From Parasitella parasitica NRRL 2501 (taxonomy: Eukaryota > Fungi > Mucoromycota): DNA of 64,000 bases. The translations under genes were made by a program, and so were the position numbers. This document shows positions 16,461 to 40,815 of the stretch, piece by piece (position 1 is the stretch's first letter; each line of letters opens with the position of its first letter). Under the pieces are notes generated by a model, which saw only the letters and a list, made by a program, of their open reading frames with translations, was not told where the DNA came from and searched no databases. The stretch spans positions 118,596 to 182,595 of the forward strand of contig MU619281.1 in assembly GCA_025201805.1 (NCBI GenBank), in the 5' to 3' direction.

Positions 16461-17322
16461 AATTTCTTATATATAGATTTCCACCACCCAAACCCCTAGA
16501 GCAACTTTATGCTTGTTGTTTTTCATTTCCTTGTATTTTTAGCTTATTTATTTATGCAACTATTCCCTCACTCTTATAAAAAGAAAGAAATACTCTGTAC
16601 AATGCAATGTATAATAAACGTGTACTTATGCGAAGGCAGACTCGCAACAGTTAAAACTTCTGATTGCTAGAAAGCAAATATTAGAGATACAATAAAAATT
16701 GCTATCTGCATCATTCTAAAATTGATATTTTAAAGGTATAAAGTTTGTTAAGAATTCAAACAGTGATGAAATCATACAAAAACAAAATGGTGGTATGCTT
16801 GAACTCATAACGTAGACTTATTAGCGACGTCTTGGATTTGACGCAAAAAAAAAAAAAAAAAAAAAAAAAAATGAATCGAAAACAAGTTTTGACTTGATAA
16901 CTTATTTGCTAAAAGTACGGCCAGAAAGGTGTATACAGGTAGTTTTTATACAATGGCATTTCTCAGTGATACATGATAAAAATGTATATTTTTCGAATGG
17001 TCAGGACCCCAAGGATTTATAAAGAGCGCACATTAATGCAATATATAATTATTTATTATCATTTTTTGGCCGTTTATTGTAGATAATACAGTGTTATAGC
17101 AATAGTCTGATGAGTATGATGGCCATTGTTGTATCATTAGATGCGCTTTTTAATAAAGTCGTATCGGGTACTCTTATGTTTCCTGTTTTTTTTACAAGAC
17201 ACAAAGAATGGCGCATCATAAATACTGTAGGGTCCCCGTTTGTTTTGAAGAATGACACCCAGGTATATATATGTACATTAGAATCATTCAAGTTGTCAAG
17301 CACTTGATTATGTCCATTGCAC

Positions 17323-17340
17323 AAACAATGAAACTTCAAG
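17323..17340 (+). promoter_or_regulatory. Conserved upstream element of 7-TM paralog 2 (aaacaatgaaacttcaag)
   Basis: Variant of the motif shared upstream of paralogs 2-6, about 435 bp before the ATG. Confidence 0.5.
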
Positions 17341-17759
17341 CGGCGTTTCCCTTTTAGGTTTTGCATTTTAGCTTCAAGATCAGCGTTATATCTTATAATA
17401 TACCGTAGTAATGGATCAAGATTAATAGAAGAGCCGAGTGTATAGAAACGGTTATTCCTATAATAGTGCGAATACTATGCAATTATATCACGAAGCTTAT
17501 TGAGACAATAGATAATTTACTATTTCCTTTCGTTCACGCATCGGTTATTTGATTTACATATAAAGAAGGATGGCCTCGTCCAAGCGACTCGCTTGACATT
17601 CGCGTGATATATTATGTGTATGCAGACAAAGGGAAAAAGCATTATTGTCATATGAGGGGTTCATTGGAAAGTCGTTTTCTCTATTTAATGCCAAAGTCTA
17701 TTCTGTTTCTACTATCTTCTTCATTTATTCACTCTTTTCCCTTCCTGAACATAAAAATT

Positions 17760-19122
17760 ATGAACCAAAATGACAACAGTGCATCGCATAGCTGCCCCTT
17801 GCAATTGAATACACTGGGTTGCATAAACGATGCACCTTTGCTACACATTTATATTACAAACATAGCATGGTCGTCAGCAAACGCATTGATAGGTAAGTGA
17901 ATTTTCTATATATATAGTAAACACGGTGGGACATGGAGTAAGTGATTGACATTTCATTTACAGGCCTTGCTGTGCTATTCTACGGAGTGTTTAAAAAGAA
18001 ACTTCCCATCTTTGGCAGTAGAGCTGCCTGTTCTATCAGACCAAGGCCAATTGAGTCTATGCTACTGTTTGGGTCGATTTATAACATGCGTAAATACGAA
18101 TATAGTATCAAATGGGTAGAGATACCAGCATACTAATGCGACTACTTATTTAGTCAAAGCTATAGCTCAAGTTTTAACCATCACAAACAGTTACCCAGAT
18201 CCTATCTTCAAATCATGTATGTGCGTATATATAACTGTATTCACACATATGACCTAATAACATTTTACAGTCTTTGAAAACTTACCATGGCAGTTTTGCT
18301 ATTATTCATTTGCATGTTATCTGTTTGGCGTTGCTCATACAGTCTGCAATGTAAGTCTGAAATGTGTATGTTTGTGCAGACTTAGTAACAAAAAAAAACA
18401 TTTAGAGCAAAGAAATTATTGGTGATAAACACCGTACATTGCCAGTGATCATCGACATTTTTTTCATCATGTTCACAATATTCCCATTCGTAATCACCAA
18501 TACCTGCTCCATTGCAATAGGTGCTTTGAACAAACAGGGCAACTTGGGAACTTCAAAATATACTGACGCACTAAATTACTCATGGTTGCTGTATTCTGCT
18601 ATATTAGCTTTGTGGATCCCATATGCTGGATATTTATTGATTAAGGTTTTGAAACAGCAGATAGCTAAAAATGAAAATAGACCCGCATTTGTCCAGAATG
18701 TCAAAGCTGCCATGTTTAAAGTAAGTACCATACGTAACGGCTAATTTAAGAACGATAAAAGTACTTACTATTCCTCACACAGATTCTCATGACTATGCTA
18801 ATTGCCATCGCTACCTTAATGACATCTATAATATTCGAAGTGCTCACGATATTAAAAGTGAATACTTCTCAAAACTACCACTTGACCTTGGCAATGTATA
18901 TCATCAACGCCTTTAATAGTACGTTGGCTTCTACACTAGTTATTTTGGCTATTCTATTCAAGTACGATTTATCACATTGTTTGAACTGTGCTGTTTACTA
19001 AATCTTTTGATTATAGCCCAAAATTATTGACTCCTTTCGGCTTGCCATCCCCAAGCCGAGAAGAATCTGCTGAACATACTATGGGACTTGACAGTGGCAC
19101 TGGAATGCAAAAAGGCCCATAA
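17760..19122 (+). CDS. Orphan 7-TM GPCR-like protein, paralog 2 (7 exons, most divergent)
   Basis: MNQNDNSASHSCPLQLNTLGCINDAPLL.. / ..IRPRPIESMLLFGSIYNM / KAIAQVLTITNSYPDPIFKS / LPWQFCYYSFACYLFGVAHTVCN / ..AGYLLIKVLKQQI..AAMFK / ILMTM..LASTLVILAILF / NPKLLTPF..GP*. Confidence 0.82.
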
Positions 19123-19707
19123 ATCATCTGCAGATATAACTCACGAAATGTTATTATTGATCTTCTCATCTCCAATATGTATTATAATTCGCACAAAGAG
19201 TTAATGCATGTTAGCTGTAAAGCTATTGCTTCAATTGCACCAACAACACAGATACATAGTTCACCTTGATCAATACATCCATCATGTCTATATACTCGAG
19301 GTAGTATTCAATATTCTCTGATCCACCACTCTGCTAGTGCCTCAATCTCTTGAGATAACATAGTATAGAACACTTGTAAATATGATGTTTCGGACTCGAC
19401 GTCTAAATATTTTTCCCGTAGGTTAGTTTCGAATCATTATTTGTAAAAAGAAAATTAATATAGTATAATAAAATTCATAATGAGCTTTAATTAATGAACA
19501 TGAGGTTCAGGGTTCTTTTTCCTCGATGTATAAAATAAAAAGGGATTGTCCTCACCGACTACTAATTCGACAACCACAAATCAATTATCCTTGTGTTGTA
19601 AATAATGAAATTATTTAATGGTGGTGAGAGACGATTGATTAATCATGCGGGCTTCTTTATTAACCATATCTACTATTTTTTTTATTTATTTTTTTACTAC
19701 AAACGAG

Positions 19708-19920
19708 CTGGTCACCCTGCCCATTTTGGTGACTTTTGCACCTTCGCTATGCTGCGGTAAAAATCGACCATTGTTTACGCGGGGTCCATCTCGCTCTGCG
19801 AGGCAGCCAGTCTTTAAAATAAATAAGACTTATTGTTTTCAAGTGTATATGTTGTATCTATAAAATCCCATGGTTACCGCTCAGTTGTCATGGCAACTGT
19901 TCCTGATCGGATCCAAGGTT
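19708..19920 (+). repeat. Dispersed non-coding repeat, copy A (probable TE relic)
   Basis: ggtcaccc..ttttgcacctt.gcta.gct.c.gtaaaaa.cgacc..gtttacgcggg.tccatc..gctctgc.aggc..cagtct.taaaat...ctgatcggatc.aagg, also present at 55203-55483. Confidence 0.8.
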
Positions 19921-20293
19921 ATAAGATATTTTATTTTCGACTCAGCTACAGCATTCTTCAAAACTATCAACCGCTCCTTACCACAGGCTGTTCATTTGCT
20001 GTCTTGGATGTTAGCTTACATCCATTCAAGGATTGGATTAAAAAATAAAGTATTTATAATAAGAAAATAGTATCATATCTATAACAATATGCGATCCTCT
20101 TAGCTTATTTAGTAAAAACGTTTTGTCCACCGTTTTTATTATTATTATTATTATTACTGTTTATCAAGTAAATCAATCATCATCAAGCTTTAGAAGTTCA
20201 TTTACATTTTAGTTTGTGCCACATGTAAAATTAATTGTACTCGTTATAATCGTTTTATGATTGCGTGGCGATCGCCTGATTAGTTCTGCTCCA

Positions 20294-20316
20294 GAAATAA
20301 TGAAATTGGAAAGGGG
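20294..20316 (+). promoter_or_regulatory. Conserved upstream element of 7-TM paralog 3 (gaaataatgaaattggaaagggg)
   Basis: Motif variant about 630 bp before the ATG. A second gaaacaatg occurs at about 20783. Confidence 0.5.
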
Positions 20317-20923
20317 ATGCAAAGGGACTTTTTTTAAAGCAGGCTTTAGCACTGAGAAAACGTTGAGTGATTGCAATTAATTTCTGTAAACCTTGTCCAT
20401 ATTTCTTTATCTATTACATTTGAGCAGTGTAAGATCTACCAGGAGCATCTCCATTTTATCGACGTCTGTTTGAAAGCTTTACCCAAAAACAGGAAACAAG
20501 GAACTGTCTTTGTTCAAGAATTGCTGTTAGCTTGTACGCAAACGTGGTTTAGTACTAGAATTACGTGCATAGATCAAAAGTTGATTCATTCATTCGAAAC
20601 TTTGTTTATTTACTATTATAAGCTTACGGTAAAGAGAGTGGAACATACATTCATCAGAAAAACGCGACACCTCTGCTTTCTTAAATTGAAATAAGTATTT
20701 ACAAAGGATTCCCTATACTTTGCTACAAAGAATTTGCAAACTTATTATACTTGCAGTAATCATATTCGCACTGTTAGGCTAAGAAACAATGCACGCCATT
20801 TAAATGAAGCTTGCATTTATGCTCGAGGTTTCTCTTGCCTCCTTCCTTCCTCTTCTCTCTTTATCTTATTCTTTTTCCTTCTTCCAGCATATCCATTTGT
20901 TTTTTCTCTCGTACAAGGCTAGC

Positions 20924-22388
20924 ATGAATACTACTGAAGACGCCCAAAACAATGATTGCCGTCTATTAGTGGGTATTGTAGGCTGCGTAGACAGAGAACC
21001 CATGGTGTACATATTTATTTCGAGTATTATCTGGGCATTTTTGCTGGCATTCACAGGTGTGTGTGTGTACAATTTTGATTGTTGATAGTAGTAATACAAC
21101 ATGGATTAGCAATAAATTAATCCTTCATTAATACCAAACTATCAATAGGTTTCGCACTGCTATGGCAAAGAGTTGTTATCAAGAAACTACCGATTTTTGA
21201 TTTTAGCTCATCACATATGTTTATCATCAGACCAAAGCCGATTGAATCTATGCTATTATTTGGATCAATCTATAATGCGCGTAAATACTCTATAATCAAA
21301 TAGCAATTTTGACGGCATTTTAACATTACTATAGTCAGAGTTATAAATACAATATTGCTTCTTACTTGCGGCGCACCCGAGTCCGTTATTAGAACATGTA
21401 AATATATAGTAGACTTGTTCACATATTTAGACTCTAACCGCAATATACAGTTTTGGACTCACTGCCATGGCAGTTTGGTATTTGTGCTTTTTCATGCTAT
21501 TTGTTTGGCATCGCTCATACAATCTGCAGTGTACGTATGTCTCTCATTATTTGACATAATATGCAGAAAAAAACTAACGCATATATATATATAGAGCAAC
21601 CAACTCATTGGGAAAAGCTGGTACAGGAAATCATTCAAAATGGACGTAATTTGTACCCTCTTCATTGGAGTGCCCTTTATCATCCACAACATCTGCTCGA
21701 TTGGATCAGCCGCAATTGCCGAACATGAAGTAGCTAAAGCTCTAAAAAATGCAGGGTATTATATCCTGTCAATTCATCTCTGCATACTGGCTTTTTGGGT
21801 TTTCGTTGCTGGGTTACAGTTGATCAAAATTTTAAAACAACATTTACACAATCAAATCGACGCTGGCGATAACGCAGCTATTGAAAAGGTCAAAAATGGC
21901 TTATTCAAAGTAATTAAATTCACGGTAAATCAATGAATATTGAAAATACTCACTGTATATCCCCACAGGTTCGCATGACAATGACCATTTGCATCGTTTC
22001 GTTGTTCATATTCGTACTTCTCAGATTCCTTTATTCCTTCCTAAATACGTATTTCTCACAAAACTACGCCTTAAACCTGGCCATGTCAATTTTGTTGACC
22101 TATGACGGCATACTGGCATCAACACTGGTTGTCCTGACAGTAGTGTTCAAGTAAGTTTAAGTCTCTGATAAAACCCAATCGCTAGCTAACCTTTCAAATA
22201 TTTAGTCCTAAAGCTTTGAGCTCTTTTAATTTAACTTCCTCAAATCAGAATATGTCTGACGAATCTCAAATTGACAAAAGTGCTTTTACCACGACCACAG
22301 ATGACTTGACACTAATAACAAGTCGTTCTGAAACGCAAAAAGATAGTTGTAATTATAACAGACGATCATTCGATTATTCAAAATCACC

Positions 22389-22395
<7 letters not shown>
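20924..22395 (+). CDS. Orphan 7-TM GPCR-like protein, paralog 3 (7 exons)
   Basis: MNTTEDAQNNDCRLLVGIVGCVDREPMVYIF.. / ..IIRPKPIESMLLFGSIYNA / RVINTILLLTCGAPESVIRT / LPWQFGICAFSCYLFGIAHTICS / ..AGLQLIKILKQHL..KVKNGLFK / VRMTM..LASTLVVLTVVF / NPKALSSF..SPV*. Seven hydrophobic segments. Confidence 0.85.
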
Positions 22396-22419
<24 letters not shown>

Positions 22420-23169
22420 CCCTTAATTGTACACATAGAGTTTAATCACATAGTTTGATGCCATCAGAACAGTGCCATTTAACGACTCCGTTTCATTAGG
22501 CACCTTGCACCGCAGCTCACATCAGATGGTGATGAAGTGCTGCATATTAAAGTGAAACTCTGCTGCCCCTGATGAGGTTCGACCGACATTTTGGAATTTA
22601 TTATTCAAAATCAATAAACATATCTTAAATATTAGCGTAGTATTGTGGAAAATTTATATTCTTCGCCGAAAATCCATGAGTAGTTAGACCTTAGGGGTTT
22701 CGCCTTTAATCCCATATTTTGTATGAATATGCATTGAGTTTCGAGTAGTCCCTGCATGCATCTCGCCTATTTGCAAACTTTGATTCCTTACACCACGCAT
22801 AACGCTCAATCGCGCTTTCTTAGACACAAAATTATTTTCTATCACGAATCTATACGAAAAACGTTATCGAAGCCTGGCCATATATTTATATTCAAAAATC
22901 TATGTGGTAGAGAGAGGGAGGGAGTATTAATTTATTTCAAATATCCAATAAGTACTGTTAACCCCCCCCCCCAGAAAGAAGCTACATGATGTGCACATAT
23001 TCCATCAGATTACATCAAGCATTGTGCTCCAAACAAGTATAGTGAAAATAACAAACCCACCATGGTCCAGTTAGCAATATACTCTTGTCACGGAAAAGTA
23101 GGAGGTGCTTTCAAAACTCGGTAAACGAGACTAAAAGCGCAGAGTATAGCCGACTATACCTTTAATTTT

Positions 23170-23192
23170 GAAACAATGAAATTAGAGGAAGG
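23170..23192 (+). promoter_or_regulatory. Conserved upstream element of 7-TM paralog 4 (gaaacaatgaaattagagg)
   Basis: About 485 bp before the ATG. With the preceding T it forms TGAAACA. Confidence 0.55.
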
Positions 23193-23654
23193 AGCCCAAG
23201 GGAGTTCCATTTTACTAAGGAGATTTGATCAACATTTCTACATATAGTCTGTTTGAATGGTATAAGTTTTATTGGTAGCAGTTGATCATTGCCATTATAA
23301 CACTTGGTTGAGTGTGAACGCGCATTATAAAATTTATTATAACACCGAAAAACACTTCGCTAACAATAAAATAAAGTGAACCATAGAATATGTATTCAAA
23401 GGACAAGATGTACGTTTGATTAGAGCAAATGTAAACTATTCAAATCAGGCATAAAAAGGATATAAAAAATTCATGCACATGCTTACAGAAAGTTTTGTGA
23501 TTGTATAATCAAAGACGCCAAGCTTTGCATTCTGATATGACAATTGCTGTACTTGCGCTGTTTAACTCAGGTCTTGCAGATCCTTATTTTAGCCAAGGTA
23601 TTACTTGTCTCCTTCACTTCATATTTTGCTTTTTTTGTTTCAATCTGAACAAAT

Positions 23655-25046
23655 ATGAATAGTACTGAAAGCGGCTCCGGCAGTGGCTGCATGCTACCAG
23701 CAGATTTTATGGGCTGTATAGATAGGGGCCCTATGCAGTACATGTTAATTTTGAAAACCATTTGGGTATATATCTGGGCAATCGCAAGTATGGGACAAAC
23801 TGAATATTTGATAGCATTAGAAACCAATGAATTGATCCCCCACCCTTGTTATCAAAAAATATAGGTTTTGGTTTGCTTTGGCAAAGAGTTACCTTTAAGA
23901 AACTACCCATTTTTGATTTCAGTTCGCCATATATGTATACTATTATACCAAAACCAATTGAATCAATGTTATTATTCATATCCATATTCAATACACGTAG
24001 ACATGCTATTAAAAACTGACACTATCTCGGCGCATTAATATATATATAATTGTGGCTAAAGACTTCCAGTACTACAGTGATCCTCAAGCATGGAAAATCT
24101 ACTTTCGTGATAAGAACATGTGAGCTTTTAACCGCTCATTTTAGAACTCATCATCTAATATATACCGATAAGTAGTGCTGAGAAACTTGTCATGACAGTT
24201 TGGCATTTGTCCATTTTTATGCCATTTAATCGGTATTGCCCATACAGTCTGCAGTGTACGCCTCAAAGCATTTACAGCAAAATATAGTGTAACTAGCGAG
24301 ATCAGACAGAGCAACCAATTAGTTGGAAATAACATGAACAAAATATCGCTCAAAATCGACCACATTTGTTGCATCTCCATTCATTTGCTGTATCATCACA
24401 GCTGTTGTATCAACTTTGTATGCTGAACAGGGCAACGTTCCAAGGGCCAGCTTGATCAAAGGAGTACGCAGTTTTATAATAATGCTGCACATCTTTATCT
24501 TGGCTTGTTTTATTTTTGTTTTAGTTTTTATTTTTTATTTTTTATTTTTTTTTTTGCTAGATTGCGATTAATCAAGATTTTGAAACGACATTTACGCAAC
24601 AAAACAGAAGCAAACGTTGAATCTGTTGATAAATCTGGATCTCGAAAGAATACAGAATACTTACTATTATATAGGTTCACATGATTATGCTACTTAGGAT
24701 CATTTGTTATTTTCTCAGAATTTTGCATATCCTGCTACTTCGCTCTTTTTCACACAATACTATTCCAACCGTAGCTGCTTGTATTTTTTTGGTCTAAGAT
24801 AGTATTATAACTACAACGCTGCCCATCTTGACTGTTACGATCAAGTAATATTGCCCCTTGATAAATCAACTAAAGTGTTAAATGCATAGTCCTAAAATAT
24901 TAAGCCCTTTTAATTTGAATTTTTTAAAACAAGAGAAGTTTTTTGATGCTAACGCTACTAGCTCTGATTTTATCTCTCGTGCAGGTGAATCCACTTTGAT
25001 TACTGGCCATTCCGGTGATCTAAAATGGCGATTACAAATTCCATAA
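23655..25046 (+). pseudogene. 7-TM GPCR-like paralog 4, pseudogene
   Basis: Exons 1-2 are intact (CMLPADFMGCIDRGP; PKPIESMLLF). The conserved PWQFG reads S*QFG (TGA at 24193-24195). Exon 5 carries deletions/frameshifts and a T-rich expansion at about 24505-24555. Confidence 0.82.
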
Positions 25047-25649
25047 ACAATCTCCAGAGTCCCTATCATCTCAAGTTTAAAAGAAATAACTAGATGTTAT
25101 TATTTAAAGCATAATTCAGTCTGAGAAAAATTACTATAAAAATTTGTGCCAAAATTCACTTAATGGCACAACTAATCTTGTATTACATTTCATCACATAG
25201 CCCTTCTGGCGCCGTGATGGCGGAAATTTTGTCTTTTTCTTTTAACGCCTTTCGATTAATACGACACTTTTGACATTCTCTATGAATTTTATCAAGTTAA
25301 TGAAAATATAACAGTTCTTTTGGTATGTTTTTAACAACTTGGGCACCTTGAACGAACCTTAATCCTAACCCTAAAAAAACCAGATAAAAATCAGGTACCG
25401 TTTTAAAATAACAGATCATTTCAAGAATAAAAAAGTAAAACAATCTGAGACTGTTGAAGAGCGTATATTATTCTACTTTGCTTTGCAATTTTGCAATTTT
25501 ATAAAAGCAATTCATAATAGTCATCAATGTATGCCGATCAAGTGAAAGAGAGGGCCACAGTAAAGGGCCTAATTTATATTGTCTAATGAATAGAAATAAT
25601 ATTGCTGAAAATCAGCTAACTGCTAGAAGCTTTGTTGCATGTAGTTCCT

Positions 25650-25900
25650 GCGGATCTCACTCCAACAAATGTTGCCGATCGAACTAATCCGGTACCAGTA
25701 AGCGGTCAATTTAAGGACGCTGCTTACTGTTACACGATCGAATTTTGAAAGCGCCGCTTTCCACAGTATTCTTTATTCTGGACAAAGGAGACAAGCTAAG
25801 AACGGTGGAGGAAATTAACAGTATTGTTTCTGAAAATAATAAATCAAACCTTTATCCTCTTGCACACGAATCAGCAACTACTAACATGGTGCACGGCCTC
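25650..25900 (+). mobile_element. Helitron RepHel (Rep domain) relic
   Basis: AAYCYTIEF*KRRFP corresponds to the Helitron Rep motif YTIEFQKRGLPH. It is followed, after a frameshift, by FFILDKGDKLRTVEEINSIVSE..LYPLAHESATTNMVHG, matching Helitron ..IDxxISAE...MxHGPC. Confidence 0.75.
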
Positions 25901-26041
25901 AAAATTGCAGTTTTTTATTCCCCTCTGAATGTTTATATAAGACCCAATACTACTACTATATGCACATTGATTAAAGTGATCTTGCTATAATTTTGTGCAA
26001 ATTTAGCGATGGTAAATCAAACATCTGACTGGATTTGCTCG

Positions 26042-26060
26042 GAAACAATGAAATTTGAAG
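26042..26060 (+). promoter_or_regulatory. Conserved upstream element of 7-TM paralog 5 (gaaacaatgaaatttgaag)
   Basis: Identical over 19 nt to the element upstream of paralog 6. Confidence 0.6.
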
Positions 26061-26411
26061 AAAAAAGTCTAGGGGGGGACCCTTCTAATGGCCTGCAGCA
26101 CTAGGACAACATTGGTGTAGCACATTTCTGTAAAGATTATCATTATTTATACATTAATTATACAAACGAACAGTGCCAGTTTTGTCAATCACAATGTATT
26201 CAAAAATACTAAATATTCAAGTATTTTCTTCAAAGAATTTAAAGTACTAAGCAATAGGGCTTTTGTTTTGTTTAGCTATTTTCTCCTATGCCAATATATG
26301 ATTTGAAAAATGAAAAAAAATGATAAAAAACAAACGTGATTTTAGTACAAATGAGGATTGTGTACATTTGCAAAAGTCTAGTATATTTGCCTTCCATTGT
26401 CATGTCGCCAT

Positions 26412-26414
<3 letters not shown>

Positions 26415-26480
<66 letters not shown>
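26415..26480. repeat. Poly(A) tract, 66 nt
   Basis: Homopolymer about 315 bp upstream of the paralog 5 ATG. Confidence 0.9.
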
Positions 26481-26481
<1 letters not shown>

Positions 26482-26794
26482 CAAAGCAAAGCTTTGAAAT
26501 GGAATACATGTGTATTTTTTAATGAGCAACCATGAGTGAATGTAAAAAGAGTTGAAGAGAAGTATGAGGATGTCCATATTCCGTTACACGCTATAATTCT
26601 CTAGTTTTGTAAAATTTAAAGCAAGATGGAAATGCATTGTATTGTAACCACACTTTGCATTGTTAGATTAAGAAAGAGTGTATCCCAATTAGAATAAATA
26701 TTGTTTTTATTTTCGAGATATGTCTTGCCTCCTTCCTCTTTATCCCATCCTTTTCTTTCTTTTTCCAACTTTTATCAAAACTTATATACACTAC

Positions 26795-28236
26795 ATGAAT
26801 CATACTGACCCCAATCAAAGCAGTAGCTGTGGAATATCAGTAGGCTTTATAGGCTGCGTGGACGAAAAGCCTATGGTGTATCTATTTATATCAAATGCTA
26901 TCTGGGAAATTATTCTAGCGATCATAGGTGTGTAAGCAATTTTGATGTTGAGATGATAAACTAACATTTTTGCTGCTACAAAAAAAGGCTGGGGATTGTT
27001 ATGGCATAGGGTTATCATCAAGAAAATGCCTATTTTTGACTATAGTTCGCCGTACATATTCATTATCAGGCCAAAGCCAATTGAATCTATGATTCTGTTT
27101 GGAAGCATTTACAACATTTGTAAGCTTGGTTTTTTTGAATAATACTTTGACAACGTGTTCACATAGTTTGCAGGCAGAGTTTTGAATACCATTCTCTTTC
27201 TCACTCATGCACCCGAAAATCTCATCAAAGCATGTAAATATTGCTCATGCACTCATCCAAATACATCCAAATATATAACTTACTGACTACAATCTCAAGT
27301 TTTAAAAGAGTTACCATGGCAATTTGGTTGTTGTTCATTTGCGTGCTACCTATTCGGCATCGCCCATACAGTCTGCAGCGTAGGGTTATATTGTCTGTAA
27401 ATAGTATGCGCTATACTGACAAGTTTACCCAGAGCAACCAAATTTTTAAGGATAACTGGTACAAACAAGCACTAAAAATCGATATTATTTGCACCATGTT
27501 TATTGCATTGCCATTTATCACCAACAACATCTGTTCTATTAGTAAATTTGTATACACCCAGCAAGGCAACCTCAAGAAAGCTATATTATTTGATAATGTA
27601 CTATCGATATTGTGGGCAACGCACATCTTCATATTGTCTTGTTGGATCTTCTTTGCGGGATTACGATTAATCAAGATTTTGAAGCAGCATCTTCGCAACC
27701 AAATCGAGGCCGAGAATGCCGCAGCTATTGACAAGATCAGAAATGGCCTATTTAAAGTAGATCTACGTCGACATAAAGGGCTATGAAAAATACTCATCCA
27801 CTATTGTACAGGTTCGCATGACCATGGCAATTTCCATATCTTGCATGTTGTCATTTATACTTATCAAATGCCTGCACGTCGTTTTGATCAAGCATTTCGC
27901 ACATAACCGTAGCTTGACCATGGCCATGTCTACTATCCTGTTGCTAAATGGCACAGTAGCCTCAACGCTGGTAATCTTGACTATGCTAATCAAGTAAGTT
28001 TGAGCCCAGTTAAATTAAATCACTTGCTGACATGTCAAATATACAGCCCCAAAGCGCTGAGTTCTTTTAATTTTTTTTCCTCTGCCCAAGAAAGTTCTTG
28101 TGAATCTAACGCTGATAGCTCTTTCTTGTCCTCTCAGGCAGCAGATGAGTGCACCTTGATTGCAAGCCGAAAAGACAATTACAATATTCAAGTAGAGCTA
28201 GTGGACCAAACCGAAGAAAAGAAAGAACCCTGCTAA
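26795..28236 (+). CDS. Orphan 7-TM GPCR-like protein, paralog 5 (7 exons)
   Basis: MNHTDPNQSSSCGISVGFIGCVDEKPMVYLF.. / ..IIRPKPIESMILFGSIYNI / RVLNTILFLTHAPENLIKA / LPWQFGCCSFACYLFGIAHTVCS / ..AGLRLIKILKQHL..KIRNGLFK / VRMTM..VASTLVILTMLI / NPKALSSF..EPC*. Confidence 0.85.
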
Positions 28237-28470
28237 GAGGATTTCCTCTACCTAATTTTAACTCGACAAAAAACACGGCCTGCAACCAGCACAACCTACC
28301 CTGATAACCTAATTCATAATTTCCTAATAATACATATGGAAGTGAAGCTCGACGAAAAATCGTGGTGGATACTCCCAGCTAATACCGTGCACTTACTATA
28401 ACAATCCAGCCACAAAAGGGTCACATTTATAAAATAAAACAATCCCTATTCCTTTTTTCTTTTCTCAAAG

Positions 28471-29919
28471 ATGAATCGTACACCACTGTTAAAAACTCTG
28501 TTTTTATCAATCTCTACAGGTAAAAGTATAACTCCATCTAAGCTACGGTCGTTGATGACTAAATTTCCTGCTACAGAATGCTTTCAACAGCGATCATATG
28601 CAATTATGAGCCGAGCAAAACATCGAGCAGGCCTCCCTGTTGCACCAGTAACCTCTACCAGTACAAAGGCACCCAAAAAAGCAACAAGCAGGAATGCGAA
28701 AGCGGCCAAGGATGCTCTGAAATGGCGCACTACAGGATACTTTAACAAACAGCATGAGCATGCAGACGAAAAAACCACGCGGGCTTTATTGAAAAATCGA
28801 TTAGAGAATTTGAATTTTCGAAAACCTGCAGACATCAGCGAACGATTGATCAAAGTGCAACCACAAAGCGAGATTGTTCAGCCTGAAAATCCACATTTAC
28901 TCAAAGTTGCTGTCATTGGAGCTGCCAATGCTGGAAAATCAACCTTGATTAACAAAATCGTAGGAGAAGAGGTAAGTCATTTTGACAGCTTCGGATAGGC
29001 AATTAACTGGTATGACAGGTGACGGGCGTATCACCCAAGGCACATACAACAAGAGAAAGGATTTTAGCTGTATATTCTCATGGTAATTATCAGATTGTAT
29101 TTCTAGACACTCCAGGTGTCATTCCTGACCACAATCATGCCAAGATGAATCGAACATTAGCTACTACTTCATGGAGATCTTTGGATGAGGCAGATCACGG
29201 TATGTTTGCGCAGTGTAGGTCTATTTATGTCCCTGACGAGCTTTTTCCCCTTAGTGATGATTGTTGTGGATGCTGGTCGGTCTATTCAGCCTCAATCTCG
29301 TGCAGCTAAAGATTTCATATTGGATAGAATCAAGGATCTGAAAATTCCAGCTACGTTGGTTTTCAACAAGATGGATCTACTGCACGAGGATCGCAGTTTA
29401 TTAGAGCAAGTCGCAGAAGAATACACTAACGGGTATCCTCGCTTCAAAAAGACATTGTATATATCAGCAGTCTATGAAGAAGGAATAGAAAAAGTCAAGG
29501 TAGTATATGTGTACATGGCCATAGCTAAAGACTAGCGATTCTTACTTGGATGATAGGACGTGTTATGCGAGCAATCACCTAAAAAGAAATGGTTATATCC
29601 AGCAGACCAAAAAACAGAAACGCCTACTTTGAAGCGAGTCGAAGAGCTGATTCGAGTTCAATTTTTCAAGAGATTGCATCAGTACATTCCCTACATGCTG
29701 AAGCTGGAAAATGTTGGCTGGACAGAAATGAAAGACGGTACTTTGCGCATAGATCAAAATGTCTATGTGGAAAGAGATAGTCAGCAAAAGATTGTCATTG
29801 GCTTTCAGGGCAGAATCATCAACAGTGTAGTCGAAGAAGCTACAAAGCAGATCAGCAAAGCTCTCAAAAGGCCTGTCAAACTATTTATTCAAATCAAGAC
29901 AAGAAAACCAAACGTGTAG
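28471..29919 (+). CDS. Era-family GTPase, probably mitochondrial (ERAL1-like), 4 exons
   Basis: Basic N-terminal presequence-like region, G1 GAANAGKS, VSPKAHTTR, G3 DTPG, G4 NKMD, ISA, and a C-terminal KH domain (SQQKIVIGFQG). Confidence 0.9.
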
Positions 29920-29935
29920 AATTTATTGTAGATTA

Positions 29936-32017
29936 TTAAACTGCTTGCTGCTGTTGCTGTTTCATAGATAAAAGTTCATCGATTTTGCTCATTCCATCTA
30001 TAAACGCATGTTTATCCAATAAGCCCTTGTGATCAGGATCACATTCTTTCCAAATTCTGGCTAAATCTTCGTTCGATAGTCTACTCTTGAGCCATACAAA
30101 ATGTGCTGTTTCTCCATCCACATAGCCATCATCATGAATTGATTCAAACAGGGTTTCATAACGCTGTTTCTTCTTGCTATGATTACCAAAAGTTGTATTT
30201 TTGCTTTTCGGAGGCCGGGAGGGTGGAGGGGGTGGTGGGTCGGCTTTCTTTTTAGCAGGTTCTATCGTTGCAGTCGTCGCAGACGGCGCTTGCGACAGAG
30301 ATACAGGGTGAGTAATAGGTGAAGTAGGTCTTTCATGAAAACCAGATTTGGTCGTAGTTGGCGCTTTTGGCCTAAGTGCTGCCATCCAATCTGGCGGTGC
30401 CGTTGAAGATGAGGAAGAGACAGGATTCGTAGCTGATCTAGCTCTATTGTTCTTCAATACAGCAGATGGCTTGACATTAACATCTTGAGGTTGATTTTTG
30501 GTGTTGTCTGCAGATTGCCAACTATCTAAACTAGGTCTGACAATAAATTTGGCTCCAACTGTAGGTTTTGCAGTGGACACAGCGGGTTTTGTGGCTGCAT
30601 TGCGAGGAGGTGGTGCAGTGGTGGGTTTGGAGGATACTGTCACATTTGGTATTGTTGCTGCAGGTGCAGACTCATTTTTGTTGCTTTTGCTGAGCAAAAT
30701 CTCAATACATGACATGGCAGGTTTGGGTTGAATAGGTGGGGGATTTGATGTACTACGAAGTTTAGGTCTTGGAGGTAGAGAGGGCTGTTTTGCTGTTGTT
30801 GTGCTATTGATTTGGGGTTTAGGTTTCAAAATAGGAGGAGGTGTTGCTTTCTCGGTTGGTTCTCTGACAGCTGTTAAATTAAAATTTGGTGCGTTCGACA
30901 CTGTCTTGTTGGAGGTAGTAATAGGCGATAAATTAAGAGACGATGAAGATGAGTTTCTGCTGTTTCGGGATCTTCTAGTCGCTGTAGATATTGGTCGAGA
31001 TGGCAAACGAGGCATAGGACTACTTGAAGGAGCAGTAATTAACTTGAAAGAAGATATGGATTCTGAAGAAGCTGATTTATCACCGCTAATCTTATAACCA
31101 GACGCCTTCGTGTCAGCCGTTTTCTTCCAAGAAGGAGTGGTAGCTGTAGTAGACTTTGCAAAAGAAGTCGATTGAGACGCAAAGGGTCTGATGGAAGAAG
31201 TTGCGGTTTGGTTTTTACGCAGTTGTGAAGGTTTGATCATTTGAAATCCATCTTCTTCTTTGTCATTATTACTGTTGCTGCTATTTGGTTTAATGCTGCT
31301 CATACCATGTAGAGCAATTCCAGCAGTATTGTTCTTTAAAAATGTATTATTGGATTTCCGGTTGGAGGATGATGATTTAGGCGATCCTTTACTTAAAGCA
31401 AGCTCCAAAGCACTTTTTGTTCCCTTTCCATTCAATAGCTGAGACGGTCTCAATGTTTTTTCGGCTTGTATTGGCTCCTTTTCGGCTTCATTCAATATCG
31501 CAGATGTAGAATATGATCGAGAACGAGTAGGTGAGTAGGCCGTTGACTTCATGCTGCCGACAGGCTTTAATTTAGGTTTCGTAAATGAGTTTGCGTTGCT
31601 ATTGTCTCCATAGAGCTTGACACCCAATCCGATAGTGTTGCTATTTGATATAGAGGATGTTGCAGGTAGTTTTGCTTTACTATCGGCTGTAAAAGCGCTA
31701 GGAATACTGTTCACATTGTTATTGCTCGATTTAGAGATCTTTCCAGAAGTTATGGCAGCTTCAAAAGCATCAATAGGAGGGAATTTGGATAAAGGCCTTT
31801 CATCCATGTAGTTTTGAGATTGAGCAGCAGTTACTTGAACCACATAATTATACGGAAATAAGCCTGTTTCTGAAGTGTTTTGTATTCTGCCGGTATACCA
31901 GCCTTCTTCGCCTGACTCCTCCACGTCTACAAGTATGTCGCCTTCCCTGAATGATAGCTCTCCAGCTTCATCAGCTGAACAGTCAAACACTGCCTTCATG
32001 CTCTTTTTCGTTGTCAT
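29936..32017 (-). CDS. SH3 - Pro/Ser-rich - EH domain adaptor protein (single exon, 693 aa)
   Basis: N-terminal SH3 (AVFDC..ELSFREGD..EGWY.G..GLFPYNYV), many PxxP motifs, and a C-terminal EH domain (WLKSRLSNEDLARIWKECDPDHKGLLDKHAF). Confidence 0.85.
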   Translation of the reverse strand: MTTKKSMKAVFDCSADEAGELSFREGDILVDVEESGEEGWYTGRIQNTSETGLFPYNYVVQVTAAQSQNYMDERPLSKFPPIDAFEAAITSGKISKSSNNNVNSIPSAFTADSKAKLPATSSISNSNTIGLGVKLYGDNSNANSFTKPKLKPVGSMKSTAYSPTRSRSYSTSAILNEAEKEPIQAEKTLRPSQLLNGKGTKSALELALSKGSPKSSSSNRKSNNTFLKNNTAGIALHGMSSIKPNSSNSNNDKEEDGFQMIKPSQLRKNQTATSSIRPFASQSTSFAKSTTATTPSWKKTADTKASGYKISGDKSASSESISSFKLITAPSSSPMPRLPSRPISTATRRSRNSRNSSSSSLNLSPITTSNKTVSNAPNFNLTAVREPTEKATPPPILKPKPQINSTTTAKQPSLPPRPKLRSTSNPPPIQPKPAMSCIEILLSKSNKNESAPAATIPNVTVSSKPTTAPPPRNAATKPAVSTAKPTVGAKFIVRPSLDSWQSADNTKNQPQDVNVKPSAVLKNNRARSATNPVSSSSSTAPPDWMAALRPKAPTTTKSGFHERPTSPITHPVSLSQAPSATTATIEPAKKKADPPPPPPSRPPKSKNTTFGNHSKKKQRYETLFESIHDDGYVDGETAHFVWLKSRLSNEDLARIWKECDPDHKGLLDKHAFIDGMSKIDELLSMKQQQQQAV

Positions 32018-32167
32018 GGTTATGTAGATAAAGGATTCAAAAGAACACGAAAATTATTTTGCCACATAGACATGAGCTAATTTTGTGTGTATTTTTTCGG
32101 AAAATGAATGAAAACCCTCGCCATGCCGTTAAAACACTCAACTTTGGTAAATTCAACACAATTGCAT

Positions 32168-33003
32168 TTATTTATTGACATCTTCTACAGTTAAACCAGT
32201 TAGGCCTTTGCCATTCATCATTGCCAATACATAATCTGATATATATTTTGATTCCGCCATTGCGCCAAGGCCTACGCAGACATTCATGAAAGGTTTATAT
32301 TTTTGAAAACATTTTGAGAAAAGGCAGCTTACCTGTGTCTCCACAAGCTAATTTTTTGCTGATCGGCTGAATAACGTTGTATTTCAATACGCTTTCGAGT
32401 ATTTCTAAATGTTTTGAGGTGAAGGGGTGATCCCACATGCTTGTATTCATGGCAGGACATGCGACGACAGGTTTACATACATTCCAAGCACGAAGCACGC
32501 AGGTCTTTTTTTACGAACATGAATATGAAATTAATTAATCTTTCATGCATGGACTTCTTCATCTCTACCACTCTCGCATGCTCATTACCAATAAATTATC
32601 GCATAACCCATTTGCTATTTTACCAAGAGTATTCGCATCTAAAGGAGCAATGACCATGATGTCAGCCCAATTACGCAACTATGCAAATTGAGTATTGGAT
32701 TGCAAATTGTTGCCTATAATGTAAACATACCTCTATATGCAAGATTGGATCAGTTATTTTCTGCCATCCCTACATAGATTCTTCATGAGTCTAGTGCAAT
32801 CAATTGCTCTTGTTACATACGTTCCATTCATCTTGTTCTCTATATACTTCACAATCAATGGTCATATCCTTGACAAAAAAGTATGCTGACTCTGTCAAAA
32901 TTACTTTAACATGAATATTGGGGTCTTTTTTCAAGAAATCGACAAGCAAAGGCACTTTGATGGTTGCAATACTGCCAGTGGCACCGATAAGAATATTAGT
33001 CAT
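32168..33003 (-). CDS. Phosphopantothenoylcysteine decarboxylase / HAL3-type flavoprotein, multi-exon
   Basis: NILIGATGSIATIK, PILHIE|LRNWADIMVIAPLDANTLGKIANGLCDNL, PAMNTSMWDHP and KKLACGDTG|LGAM. Confidence 0.9.
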
Positions 33004-33884
33004 CGTGTAATAAAAATACACAAGAGACAAAAAAAAACAAATCAAGACCACCCGTGAATGAGCTTATCATTGGCCATATTTCGAAATAGGATACTGCCAA
33101 ATTTTGCCTGCTACAAGTTTGATTTTCATGACTTTCCATTAAAGATACTGGTACGTATGGATACCAATTTTCTCGCTGTACTAAAGGATGTACTCTGTGA
33201 GATTGTGAAAAATTTTGTCAAGTCTAGCAGTCAGCTGGTGTTCGATGGTCTTATTCGACCAGATGATGTTATCTGATCCAGTTCAACAAAACCGAACACA
33301 TGCGATAACTTATATATGTTTAACAATAAATTATTTTATTGCATAAATACAAATTTATGAAAAGCTGCATACAATACCCGAAGTTGCAAAAATATTTGTC
33401 ATCATATGTGCACATTTACTATAGTAATTTAGTGAATTTAGGTCAATAATTCATCCAACTCTAAGTAAATAGTAGTTTAAGAATTGATGTACACATCAAT
33501 AAACAAGCTCAACACTCGCTTAATTTTCAAAAAGAGTCGAATTTCGATTATTCTAGTCAATATTAGAGTAACATTATATCATGATTCAAAAGAAAATTGG
33601 GGAAAAATTTTAAGCAGTAACTACAAACCAAGAGAAGCTATCCAGTGCACAGAAAACCGATGTGTTGACGGCTGTTGTGATCAGAAGTATTATAAGAAAG
33701 GCTAGTTTATGTTGTGAAAAAATATCTTGCCAATATCATTTGACGTATGCAATTGATAGCATATTCTAATAAATGAAGGATTCAAGTATATACAATTTCA
33801 TTGTAATTGCTGCATTGACTATAATTAGACAACTGAAATGAGTTTTTTAATTAGTAGTTTGAAAAGCTAAAGAGTGTGATCACT

Positions 33885-33920
33885 GAAACAATGAAATTTG
33901 AAGGGGGAATGCTTCCCCCT
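33885..33920 (+). promoter_or_regulatory. Conserved upstream element of 7-TM paralog 6 (tgaaacaatgaaatttgaag) with adjacent G/C inverted repeat
   Basis: 19-nt identity with 26042-26060. Followed by ggggaa-tgc-ttcccc. About 495 bp before the ATG. Confidence 0.6.
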
Positions 33921-34321
33921 CTCGGATGCATCACGAGTGCATCAAGAATATTATTTGCGTAAGCAGTTTACTTGAAGGATGAAGCAGAAACAAAATATTG
34001 CTCTAATCTGTATAATTTTTTTTATAAAGTATACACATGTATTGGTATGCACACGATAGTCAGAACTTACATTTAACGGCGCAGAAGAAATTTACTTCAA
34101 TTTTTTTTTTTTTTTTTTCCTATTTTTTGCTTGAATCATAGATACACGTCAAGTTCATTCAGGTTTGAAGTAGTATGTTCAGTATGAATTGTCCATAAAA
34201 TTCAGACAAATGTATTCATTAGTTTATCAAGAAAAAATTGCAAATGTTTTAGTTCTTGGGTGTTGAATATATATCTATCAGCAGGCCTTTTTTTTTTTTT
34301 TTTTACTTATTTTTGATTCTC

Positions 34322-34322
<1 letters not shown>

Positions 34323-34352
<30 letters not shown>
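34323..34352. repeat. (TTTC)n microsatellite immediately 5' of the paralog 6 ATG
   Basis: tttctttctttc run. Confidence 0.85.
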
Positions 34353-34355
<3 letters not shown>

Positions 34356-34380
34356 CCCTTCCCTTCTTCTTTCTTCCAAG

Positions 34381-35871
34381 ATGTATGGACAATCTGACAA
34401 TTATGATTTCTCAAGATGCCTAAACCAGGGTGTTGCAGGCTGTGTAAACGAAGCGCCTTTGTTGTACATTTATATTTCGAACGCAATTTGGGCATTAGTA
34501 GTTGGGGTGATAGGTGTGAGCGATTTCAGTAATCATGCATAAATGAATTAACACAATGCTAAACTCAACAGGATTTGGGTTGTTATGGCATAGAACCTTT
34601 GTGAGGAAATTTCGCATTTTTGATTTCAACTCTCCCATACCTTTCATTATCAGGCCAAAGCCAATTGAATCCATGCTGTTATTTGGATCGATCTCTAATT
34701 TTCGTAGGTTTAACCTAGCATCCTGAATAGTATTTTGACAGCATATTAATCATGTTGATAGTCGACGCACTTCATTGTATTGTGACTATAACTAATCCAG
34801 ACGCCTTAGAATTAGTTGCTGAAGAGGTTCCTAAAGTTTGTAAATATACAGTAATAATACGAAAATAATTAAACGATCTAATAACTATTCATAGTCCTTG
34901 CTCATTTACCTTGGCAGTTCGGTATTTGCTCGTTTTCATGCTATCTATTTGGTATTGCTCATACAGTTTGCAATGTATATGTTATAGCATAAATTTATGA
35001 CATATTTTCAATAACTAACAATGCAAATAGAGCAATCAACTCGTTGGAAAAAACTGGTATAGAATGTCATTAAGGATTGACATTATTTGCACAGTCTTCA
35101 TCATATTACCATTCATTACCACCAATGTCTGTTCTATTGCTGTTATTGCTTCGTATTTACAGTTTCACATTGAAGCAGGCTTAATTTTTCAAGGTGTGCT
35201 ATATTATCAATGGATGGTGTATTGGTCCATACTAGCTGCCATGATTTTTATTGCTGGATTGCGGTTAATCAAGATCTTGAAAGAACATCTTCGCAATCAA
35301 ATCGAAGCTGGCAATGAAACACATGTTCAAAAGATTAAAAATGGGTTGCTCAAAGTAACTGTCTCTCAAAACAAAGAAAGATATAATATACTTACTGTCA
35401 GATAGGTTCGCATGACCATGGCGATCAGCATCAGTTCCATGCTGCTATTCATATTTATTAGATATTCTTACGATTTAATGAGAGAACAACTGGAGAATAA
35501 TTATGGAGTAACTCTGGGCTTTACTATTGTAATACTATACCACAGGACTTTAGCTACAACTCTCGTCGTCATGACTGTGTTGCTCAAGTAAGTTTTGTAT
35601 AATGACTAGAGTATACCGTCACTAACTTGTAAAGTATAGTCCTACTGCATTAGGGGCATTCATCATGATGTCTTCCAACAAAGAGAATTCACCTGAAACA
35701 AAATTTGATAGTGCCGCTAATAAATCTAATATCACCGTTCCCACAGACGAAGTGACCCTACTAGCAAGCAATATCGAAAAGGGGAAAGACAGCCACGATC
35801 TTCACAGACAGTCGATAGATGCTCTATCCCAAGATCAGAAAACTGCCATGGCGCCTCTCCAGATAGTTTAA
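34381..35871 (+). CDS. Orphan 7-TM GPCR-like protein, paralog 6 (7 exons)
   Basis: MYGQSDNYDFSRCLNQGVAGCVNEAPLLYIY.. / ..IIRPKPIESMLLFGSISNF / DALHCIVTITNPDALELVAEEVPKV / LPWQFGICSFSCYLFGIAHTVCN / ..AGLRLIKILKEHL..KIKNGLLK / VRMTM..LATTLVVMTVLL / NPTALGAF..QIV*. Confidence 0.85.
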
Positions 35872-38479
35872 TCAGCTTTGAATGTAATCAAGACAATAAC
35901 TTTGTACGTGTATCCCTAGCAGCATCAACTCACCAGAAATACTACTAATAATCCTCATTTATAAGCTCTACATAATAATATAATAATATACCTCTCTCTT
36001 TTAGTTACATTTACCTTTAATGCAATAAATATTCCATTTTTCTCGAAGTTCAAGAGAAAAGTTGAACAGTATTGTAATAGTTTATGTGCTTTGCTGCAAG
36101 TCGCGCAATCGCCACTATATTATATGAATCTATTTTCAAACAATACAGGTTACATTTAACGGTATCGGATTTGAGAAGATTAAAAACACATTCAACACAC
36201 AGCAATTTTGGATTGGCCCCTATTATATTATAATTAGGACAAAAAGCCAACCTAACAGTGCCTTTGACCCTACTCTGCACTACTTTAAATTAATGTTTTA
36301 ATATTTGATAGATACATCAAATTCTTCGTATGGCTCGGATTTATCAACTTGACGATTTAGTGAAGTTTATTGATTTCACAGCATATGGGCCTGATGCGAG
36401 TACCAAAGTTTGCAAGTAAACCATATTCAAAATTTTCAAGTACGCATAGAAAGCACGTTTGACGCGTCTACTGGTATATAACATATGCTCACCAAGGCCT
36501 GATTCTATGAAACCAGGGCCAATTTAATCTTTCTATATTAAAATTTATCGGCACCACCAAGGCAATTAGACTTAATTTATTATTGAAATACGTTTGTACT
36601 TTAATTTTCTACTAGAAGCCCAAGTTTTATATGGGTATAAACAAAACTATTTTTTCATATATTTTTGGCAGACTTGAATTATCTTATTCAATTTCAATGC
36701 AATAAATACTCAACATCCACTTTTTAGTAGCCAGTGCCACGCCCCTTTCATGCCATTGTCATCCTGATCACATTGACTTTTGAACGCACTATATTGGTCT
36801 TTTGATCGGTTCTGGCGTTTCTACTAACTTGTCGTGTCAAGAGCTGGCTTTTGCCATTCGGAAATGACTTCTGTCATAAACAGCCTCCCCCCCCCCCCAC
36901 CTTGATGATGCGAGAGTCGTTTTTCCTTCTTCTGGTCATCGAATATCGGAAAATGTAGTAAGCTACAATTACAATATGTGGAACCAGCCATATAGTACAC
37001 CTTCTTCTTTGCTTGTGAGCATGCTTCTGACAAACATTGGCTTACATCAGGAGGAAATTTGATGTTAACTTTAGCGTAAGGATATTTTTTCTATATTAGT
37101 CCCACACATGAAGGAGTTCACCAGTTATTTTTTCTTGGTTTGTTATTGTTGACTTTATTTTTTTACAACATCCATCCCATCATGTGGAGTAATCTTCACT
37201 TGAATTATGATATGGTCATATCACTCTATCAAAGCATACGATACAGCAGTGCAGATCTAATAGAACAGCAGTAAATGATTGTCTTGTGTACTTGAAAGCT
37301 TCAAATTGTATTGATTGTTTGATTGTTGTTTTAGCGTTACTAAATGATCTGTGATCCACAAACGCCAAAAAAAAAAAAAAAACTCGTTATGCTTAATAGA
37401 ATATCCTTGCTTGCTAGAAAACGAATCATTGACATGTCTCTACTTTCTAACGCCATTACCGCAAAGTCAAAAAGTTATCGGTGCCACCACCCCTGGTGAG
37501 ATGCCGAATTCATCAAAAGGAGCAACATGACGTTGTATGCGTCTTTTTTATCTCATGAGATGCCAAACATTTAAGCACATATTTGTTTGTATTTTTTCCT
37601 GAAACATTTATATACGGGTCCAAAAAGTTTGTTAAAATGACAAGTGCGTAGGACCAAGTGACAAAAGTTTCCCAAATAAAAAATAAGGATATCTTTTACG
37701 AGATCATGATTAGTCGTATGGTTATTCAATTTTGTGTGAGGCTTTATGTTTATATTTTCTGCGAAATCAGGATAATTGCGCCAATAGAAAAATTTTCCGC
37801 ATAGTTTTTCTTGAGAGTTATTGATGATCCTTTTTTTTTCATCCTGAAATGTCTATCTGAAACAGAAAACAAAGAACGGTATATGATATTAAAACAAGAT
37901 GGAAACATTACCAAAATAGCCCACAGATGCACTTCCTGAAGAAAAAGTAGTAAGATGGCGGTTTAGTATACATGGAATATTCGACAACCCAATTGAGGAT
38001 AAATCTACTTGTGATAATTATTAATACCATTATGCAACAATTTATATTTATCAAATCATTGAGTTCGCTGAACTGAAAATGATGTTTCCGGCTAATGCCA
38101 AGATATACCATGTTACATGGATTTGTTAGTAGCAATATGTAGCGAAAATATACCGAGAGTACGGTATAATGTTACACTTGGTATTTAATAATAAAAAAAA
38201 GTTGGTTTCTGTGATATGTTTATTTTCTTTTTATTGATTGTATAGAGGCATATATAACATAGTATATAGTAAGTTTTTTTTTTTTTTTCTTTTTTCTTTT
38301 TTACATTTTTTTTTCAAAAAAGAAAAAGGAAAAAAAAAAAGAGGCATAATTACACAAATATAATGAGTGAAAAAAGAATCAAAGAGAAAGAATGAGGGAG
38401 GGAGAAGAAGAGAATTACACAATTAAGAAGATATTAATATAGAAGGAAAGAAAGATTGGAAGTGAGAATATGTTTACAA

Positions 38480-40729: not shown

Positions 40730-40814
<85 letters not shown>
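40730..40814. repeat. Poly(A) tract, 85 nt (poly-T upstream of the FYR gene)
   Basis: Homopolymer. Confidence 0.9.

Positions 40815-40815
<1 letters not shown>

Follow-up and report, generated by a model that had tools for sequence, protein, structure and literature searches.

A conserved motif upstream of a cluster of receptor-like genes in Parasitella parasitica, a putative transcription-factor site

The receptor-like gene cluster

The window, the whole stretch of 64,000 nucleotides (nt) analysed here, corresponds to C45:118596-182595 in a genome of 32.8 Mb and 450 contigs; the database entries of proteins encoded in the window carry the name Parasitella parasitica and BD408DRAFT locus tags. 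Five plus-strand paralogs of an orphan multi-exon membrane-protein family, W1-W5, lie between 17.7 and 35.9 kb of the window, and a sixth cluster gene, Wm, lies on the minus strand with exons at ~8433-9684. The subject of this work is a short motif with the core AAAYAATGAAAT, which is present upstream of every gene in the array W1-W5, in each case as a 19-mer copy on the plus strand. W1, a predicted seven-helix G protein-coupled receptor (GPCR)-like paralog, occupies 17760-18972, and its final homology-mapped exon ends at ~18972. W2 extends from 20924 to 22392, with an intron at 22151-22205 that is confirmed by an RNA joint. W3 (23655-24624) is a possible pseudogene with an in-frame TGA in exon 4, its largest exon. 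It is transcribed and spliced; this could be expression of a pseudogene, or the TGA may need a read check. W4 is found at 26795-28206, and W5 at 34381-35871 encodes the database protein P0001 (KAI8642375.1, 386 aa). Exons were searched singly; the full-length proteins are database entries and not joined exon models of our own.

The AlphaFold2 model of P0001, built from a 42-sequence alignment, shows seven long helices with a predicted local distance difference test (pLDDT) score of 82.4 and a predicted template modelling (pTM) score of 0.80. All top Foldseek matches of this model in the PDB are GPCRs, although weak ones, the best being Smoothened with an E value of 2.5e-3 and template modelling (TM) scores of 0.35-0.5. 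Pfam gives nothing at threshold for single exons or for a distant paralog with a long open reading frame, and a homologue from a second assembly, P. parasitica CBS 412.66, is labelled with the GPCR family-1 profile in one source. Given such a predicted fold, the label receptor-like is reasonable but not proven. The family counts 182 representatives at E<=0.001 among 1.84 billion proteins, and every member whose source organism was looked up belongs to the Mucorales. Even in the best exon the paralogous proteins share only 35-56% identity, and their genes are flanked by DNA that cannot be aligned.

The motif and its placement

Copy 1 of the motif, CAAACAATGAAACTTCAAG at 17322-17340, lies 438 bp 5' of the W1 start codon (17760). 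Copy 2, GAAATAATGAAATTGGAAA at 20294-20312, lies 630 bp 5' of the W2 start codon (20924) and has a C>T change in its core, which resembles the binding site of a high mobility group (HMG) protein. Copy 3, GAAACAATGAAATTAGAGG at 23170-23188, is found 485 bp 5' of the W3 start codon (23655). Copies 4 and 5 are the same 19 nt, GAAACAATGAAATTTGAAG, at 26042-26060 and 33885-33903, located 753 bp 5' of the W4 start codon (26795) and 496 bp 5' of the W5 start codon (34381). Their identity ends abruptly at 19-20 nt. G-rich patches are found directly 3' of copies 2-5. A position weight matrix (PWM) of the motif scores 24.6-29.4 bits at the five sites. A preliminary description had placed a motif 430-750 bp upstream of each plus-strand paralog, with two copies identical over 19 nt and G-runs trailing four of them. 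All of this is borne out, the five sites lying 438-753 bp from the start codons and the coordinates agreeing to 1-2 nt.

The constrained core is contiguous and reads AAA[C/T]AATGAAA[T/C], with invariant positions from -6 to +6 around the ATG and no codon periodicity. The motif ATG is separated from the main ATG by a stretch with 5-19 further ATGs, and CT-rich tracts, typical of fungal start regions, are found just 5' of the main ATGs. Judging from the intervening ATGs and the CT-rich tracts, the mRNA is likely to start downstream of the motif.

A shorter version of the motif, ACAATGAA, recurs in either orientation in the promoters of the cluster. In the W5 promoter an extra inverted copy of ACAATGAA lies at 33797-33804 on the minus strand, 81 bp 5' of copy 5. 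The Wm promoter has an inverted pair, ACAATGAA at 10227-10234 on the plus strand and TTCATTGT at 10274-10281 (that is, the minus strand), and the two halves flank the CCAAT-like GCCAATGAT. A weaker second block, CAnCTGAyT, is often located 11-18 nt 5' of the core. It is seen on the plus strand as CACTTGATT at 17301-17309, 12 nt 5' of copy 1, as CGCCTGATT at 20273-20281, 12 nt 5' of copy 2, and as CATCTGACT at 26022-26030, 11 nt 5' of copy 4 and inside AATCAAACATCTGACT. Blocks related to it also precede the CBS 412.66 copies of W1, W4 and W5.

Significance and rarity in the genome

The five 1-kb upstream regions were searched for shared ungapped 19-mer blocks (seed and best partner), and the result was compared with 40 dinucleotide-preserving shuffles. 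The motif block scores 68 out of 76, compared with 56.7±0.8 and a maximum of 59 in the shuffles. It is the sole significant common block, the remaining top blocks being homopolymer or CT tracts. In pairwise local alignments of the upstream regions the motif is the best or only alignable stretch outside low complexity in most pairs, with the exception of W2/W4, which also have a proximal promoter block in common. Unbiased k-mer enrichment in the six cluster promoters gives a similar picture. Words derived from the motif lead after poly-A; ACAATGAA occurs 8 times vs 0.6 expected and AATGAA 25 times vs 8.3 expected.

The exact 13-mer GAAACAATGAAAT occurs 6 times in the genome, compared with 4 times for its reversed control, and 3 of the 6 are in this array. 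The other three (C47, C49 and C151) were considered as sites of the same family and set aside; no family exon is nearby, and their number is at control level. The degenerate 19-mer with at most one mismatch has 10 genome hits, half of them in the array, vs 3 for the control. The 11-mer AAACAATGAAA occurs 164 times genome-wide and its reversed control 87 times (~1.9-fold), and 4 copies lie within the 16.6 kb of the array vs 0.08 expected (P ~2e-6). A loose version of the 11-mer with one mismatch is not enriched over the whole window (13 vs 11.8 expected), and the signal therefore comes from the longer motif and from where it is placed. The motif does not mark a genome-wide regulon. Neither of two adverse outcomes envisaged in the preliminary description was found. 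The motif is not common in the genome or part of a dispersed repeat or mobile element, judging from the few genomic copies of the 13-mer and the degenerate 19-mer, and it is better conserved than its flanks in the shuffle and pairwise-alignment results and in the footprint given below. Two copies of AAACAATGAAA 26 nt-2 kb apart are also seen at four other loci, C10:239790-239826, C14:263399-263715, C8:236130-237685 and C47:2313-4318.

Conservation in a second Parasitella lineage

The comparison assembly for CBS 412.66 is GCA_000938895.1; its contig LN734054.1 (loci L019 and L022) shows synteny with the window. Over 8425-31806 of the window the syntenic genes are 72-80% identical in nucleotides between the two, and a conserved SH3/EH protein is 74% identical; from these values the two assemblies labelled Parasitella parasitica look like species-level lineages rather than strains. 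Global alignment of 900 bp upstream gives 57-63% identical positions. Against this background the core is 12/12 in the W4 ortholog pair and 12/12 in the W5 pair, where only 1.9% and 0.9% of 12-nt windows, respectively, are as good, and 11/12 in the W1 pair, where 8% of windows are as good. The CBS 412.66 ortholog of copy 1 retains ACAATGAA, and the second block there is CACCTGACT. The ortholog of copy 4 retains AAACAATGAAAT (12/12) and that of copy 5 retains AACAATGAAATTT (13/13), while a degenerate fourth copy (P2) retains AAACAATGAAA. At W4 the motif lies within a conserved island of ~60 nt that includes AATCAAACATCTGACT, the same in both lineages, and the conserved module around the motif measures 60-200 nt at W4 and W5. 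The inverted extra copy in the W5 promoter is partly kept as ACAATAAA, and both halves of the inverted pair of Wm are perfectly conserved. A conserved reverse ACAATGAA is thus found in both the W5 and the Wm promoters, as expected for a site that is independent of orientation.

Several other features of these promoters are apparent from the comparison. Relative to the adjacent SH3/EH gene, W5 and its motif-bearing upstream region are inverted in CBS 412.66 (33796-36050 of the window vs the reverse complement of L022 13368-15513), with the motif orientation relative to W5 preserved. In the W4 promoter the stretch 26323-26384, AAACGTGATTTTAGTACAnATGAGG..GCAAAAGT, is conserved between the lineages (86% over 64 nt). 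A proximal conserved block at 26640-26690, GGAAATGCATTGTA..GCATTGTTAGAT, contains two reverse HMG-like cores, and W2 keeps its mirror half, GAAACAATGCA, at 20783-20793. Very long poly(A) tracts of up to ~70-85 nt occur at 26410-26480, 40730-40815, 16845-16871 and 22396-22421. One of them lies between copy 4 and the W4 start codon and another directly 3' of the W2 stop codon; the 70-nt tract is missing in the CBS 412.66 ortholog.

The age of the duplications was estimated from a tree of exon 4 only (109 columns), from which W3 was omitted for its in-frame TGA. The cluster genes and five dispersed copies form one Parasitella-specific clade with support of 92/99. This clade excludes the Mucor plumbeus homologue as well as C135 and C15, two distant members of the family, and each cluster gene pairs with its CBS 412.66 ortholog. 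The duplications therefore predate the split of the Parasitella lineages and postdate the split from that Mucor. Mucor homologues were also considered as W5 orthologs on account of a neighbouring START-domain gene. The window has no START gene and M. plumbeus lies outside the whole Parasitella expansion, and these homologues were treated as outgroups.

Comparison with known binding sites

The HMG/SOX consensus is WWCAAWG, and AACAATG fits it exactly. This heptamer is present in copies 1, 3, 4 and 5 and in copies P2, P3 and P5 of CBS 412.66. Copy 2 has AATAATG, in which the critical C is lost, and P1 has CACAATG. The HMG-box core that had been proposed for the motif is compatible with four of the five window copies, which fit both WWCAAWG and the M-box described below, but not with copy 2. 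Excluding the main motif, AACAATG/CATTGTT occurs 6 times vs ~2.4 expected (an estimate from counts), a modest enrichment, and several cluster promoters have extra occurrences at about -114 to -173. The operator of yeast Rox1 is YYYATTGTTCTC. Its reverse complement GAGAACAATRRR agrees with GAAACAATGAAA of the present motif in 11/12 positions. The motif differs from SOX and Rox1 sites in the T that replaces the critical C in copy 2 and in its constraint, which spans GAAAT and thus goes past an HMG footprint.

A closer parallel in arrangement is offered by Schizosaccharomyces pombe, in which the Mat1-Mc M-box (ACAATG/ACAATA) is found beside Ste11 TR-boxes upstream of the M-specific genes mfm1-3, mam1, sxa2 and others (PMC1693924 Table 3), and a pheromone-receptor gene is among the mating-type-specific genes that such M-box/TR-box composites drive (PMC1693924). 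The mfm2 site AAACAATGGG has the same core as AAACAATGAAA. In both systems the site lies a few hundred bp upstream, in either orientation, serves a small set of genes, here putatively co-regulated, and forms a composite with a nearby second site. In contrast to S. pombe, there is no adjoining AACAAAG (TR-box) partner here, and the flank is GAAAT(T)T and not GG. The phylum is also another one, and the targets are one gene cluster rather than dispersed mating genes.

The pheromone response element (PRE) of Ste12 is TGAAACA (PMC7017024). It is found in copies 3 and 5, where it overlaps the HMG-like core, but elsewhere the T and G positions vary (GGAAACA, AGAAATA, ACAAACA, CAAAACA, ACAACA), and the PRE is therefore not the conserved part. 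With an exact match in 2/5 window copies and in 0/4 copies of the second lineage, the Ste12-like core of the preliminary description turns out to be the unconstrained half. The shared site proposed there holds as a promoter-associated, selectively maintained and array-wide element, without the Ste12 half of the composite.

Interpretation of the motif

Judged from the sequence comparisons, the motif is a selectively maintained, promoter-associated and cluster-private element with an HMG-like core. It is probably a DNA-level, orientation-independent, putative transcription-factor site that is private to the cluster. The motif would have been present in the ancestral promoter of the Parasitella-specific seven-helix GPCR-like cluster, and purifying selection would have kept it in each gene that stayed in the cluster while the remaining promoter diverged past alignment. 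One sequence-specific factor or small complex would bind the sites and co-regulate the six cluster genes. The best-fitting candidate class for AACAATG would be an HMG-box protein, with a possible partner on the GAAAT flank or on the upstream block, and the site would act as a binding module of the distal promoter, located at about -430 to -750 relative to the start codon. Protein binding, the class of the protein and the direction of the regulatory effect are what we infer.

Several observations weigh against a transcription-factor site. None of the nine main copies has a change in the ATG, and each of them faces the gene; both features fit a role at the RNA level too. An RNA contig at 23061-23270 over copy 3 indicates low-level transcription of the site in at least one copy. 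The AATAATG of copy 2 should weaken an HMG-type contact, and 19 nt exceeds a single HMG footprint. The motif is also missing upstream of five closer dispersed paralogs (C66, two on C193, C14 and C21) and of the two distant family members (PWM <=14 bits in all), and upstream of the Mucor plumbeus and M. saturninus homologues. The family as such therefore does not need it to be expressed.

The RNA evidence comes from one public run of unspecified culture condition that covers the region; its strandless contigs were compared over 20100-26099. True GT..AG joints in W2 (22150/22206) and W3 (23787/23865) indicate that the run is RNA and that W2 and W3 are therefore expressed. The W3 contig has a depth of 8.8-13.9, the highest in the stretch, and that of W2 a depth of 3.3. 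The contig over copy 3 has a depth of 4.5, is unspliced and begins 108 nt 5' of the motif, and a second intergenic contig between W2 and W3 is found at 22700-22857. Both could be read-through, a long 3' untranslated region (UTR) or an independent transcript. As the depth over copy 3 is near that of W2 and not that of W3, read-through is as likely as a long leader.

Such transcription, together with the ATG, would suit an upstream start codon acting on RNA, in which the strong-context AUG AAACAAUGA opens a minimal upstream open reading frame (uORF), within an upstream transcript or a long leader, that throttles translation of the receptors, or their transcription. We consider this unlikely. Like a GCN4-type minimal uORF, the motif has an invariant upstream ATG in good context and a very short frame; the ATG is always in the sense direction in the five window and four second-lineage copies, with a stop within 3-26 codons. 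The codons behind it (AAA, then CTT/TTG/TTA/TTT) look coding, the variants CTT/TTG/TTA being synonymous for Leu at the third codon of three copies, and the ~1.9-fold excess of AAACAATGAAA genome-wide could reflect likeness to a start-codon context. However, the resulting peptides are unrelated, with 9, 26, 23, 18 and 23 codons in the window and MKSE* and MKF* in CBS 412.66, and no peptide, length or stop context is conserved among the copies. The DNA past those stops is still conserved in the CBS 412.66 alignments irrespective of frame, and conservation reaches 6 nt 5' of the ATG, beyond the needs of a start context. The conserved extra copies in the W5 and Wm promoters are reversed. The motif is also probably 5' of the mRNA start, and the many ATGs before the main ATG would make an unspliced leader almost untranslatable, while the sole good donor-like site, GCGTAAGC behind copy 5, is GCATGAGC in the other lineage. 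It is quite improbable that a separate non-coding transcript upstream of the receptor genes has its core promoter or start region at the motif, or that these genes have an alternative distal start there. The two intergenic contigs and the larger conserved module at W4 and W5 would agree with such a start, but the contig over copy 3 already begins well 5' of the motif, so that transcription does not start at it, and the contigs are strandless. Neither known RNA families (Rfam, no match at E<=1) nor tRNAs were found in 16500-35000, and no shared RNA structure is seen, with fold z-scores of +0.8, +1.2, -0.6, +0.6, -2.2 and +1.3. A hairpin behind the ATG was rejected, as only copy 5 folds significantly (z -2.2; others +1.3 to -0.6). 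A first coding exon or N-terminal extension was rejected as well; P0001 starts at 34381, the motif frames end after 9-26 codons, splicing from the copy-5 donor, which is not conserved, to the AG preceding the main ATG would break the frame, and the copy-3 contig is unspliced. Nor is the motif a 3' UTR element of the preceding paralog, since the gene before copy 1 is a reprolysin gene and the intergenic region that holds copy 5 is a divergent one, next to the minus-strand SH3/EH gene.

The explanation that the motif has no function, being a product of chance, an uneroded remnant of tandem duplication, a short tract of gene conversion or a dispersed-repeat fragment, is strongly disfavoured and scarcely credible to us. 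The five genes are tandem duplicates, which makes common descent of the site certain, and the identity of copies 4 and 5 might suggest a recent exchange. However, the block score is ~14 standard deviations over the shuffles, and a neutral relic among paralogs so divergent, with unalignable flanks, should have decayed likewise. The duplications are older than the separation of the two lineages, whose genes differ by 20-28%, yet the orthologous core is perfect. The shared tract of copies 4 and 5 is far below the length of a conversion tract, and there is no repetition in the genome beyond chance.

The question of a mating or trisporoid link

The biology of Parasitella is trisporoid-dependent, and the fungus is a mycoparasite. 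The preliminary description proposed a composite site for the HMG proteins SexM/SexP and for Ste12, placing the array in a mating or trisporoid regulon; this is very doubtful. It would be favoured by the AACAATG core in most copies, by three STE-domain genes in the genome (PF02200 at 180-192 bits, which indicates only the presence of Ste12 homologues) and by the precedent of the S. pombe composites (PMC1693924). Against it, TGAAACA is exact in only 2/9 copies, and the exact motif is not found elsewhere beyond chance, so that there is no regulon past the cluster. W2 and W3 are moreover transcribed in the single public run, of unspecified culture condition. The suggested check for the motif at carotene-cleavage or trisporoid genes was negative; it is missing upstream of all four carotenoid-oxygenase genes, which are candidates for the trisporoid pathway. 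One such upstream region (L024, C2:289380-291900) has four AACAATG/CATTGTT in 2.5 kb vs ~1.3 expected, none of them with the extended motif. No evidence of a mating link was found in the carotenoid-oxygenase promoters or in the genome-wide motif search, and a literature search for SexM/SexP binding sites and for trisporoid receptors yielded no paper on either. A mating or trisporoid link of the motif is speculation. There is a very slim chance that the motif could be the operator through which an HMG-box factor, mating-type or related, activates a Parasitella-specific GPCR-like cluster that senses trisporoids or host signals in mating or in fusion mycoparasitism.

Biological implications

Cis-regulatory elements of the Mucorales are almost uncharted, and a site that is statistically solid and phylogenetically footprinted is useful in itself. 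For the orphan, lineage-specific and rapidly diverging GPCR-like cluster, the motif is an experimental handle on the binding factor, on co-regulation and on the ligands. If the operator reading were true, the motif would be the first cis-element, and the cluster would provide the first receptor candidates, for sexual or parasitic communication in zygomycetes.

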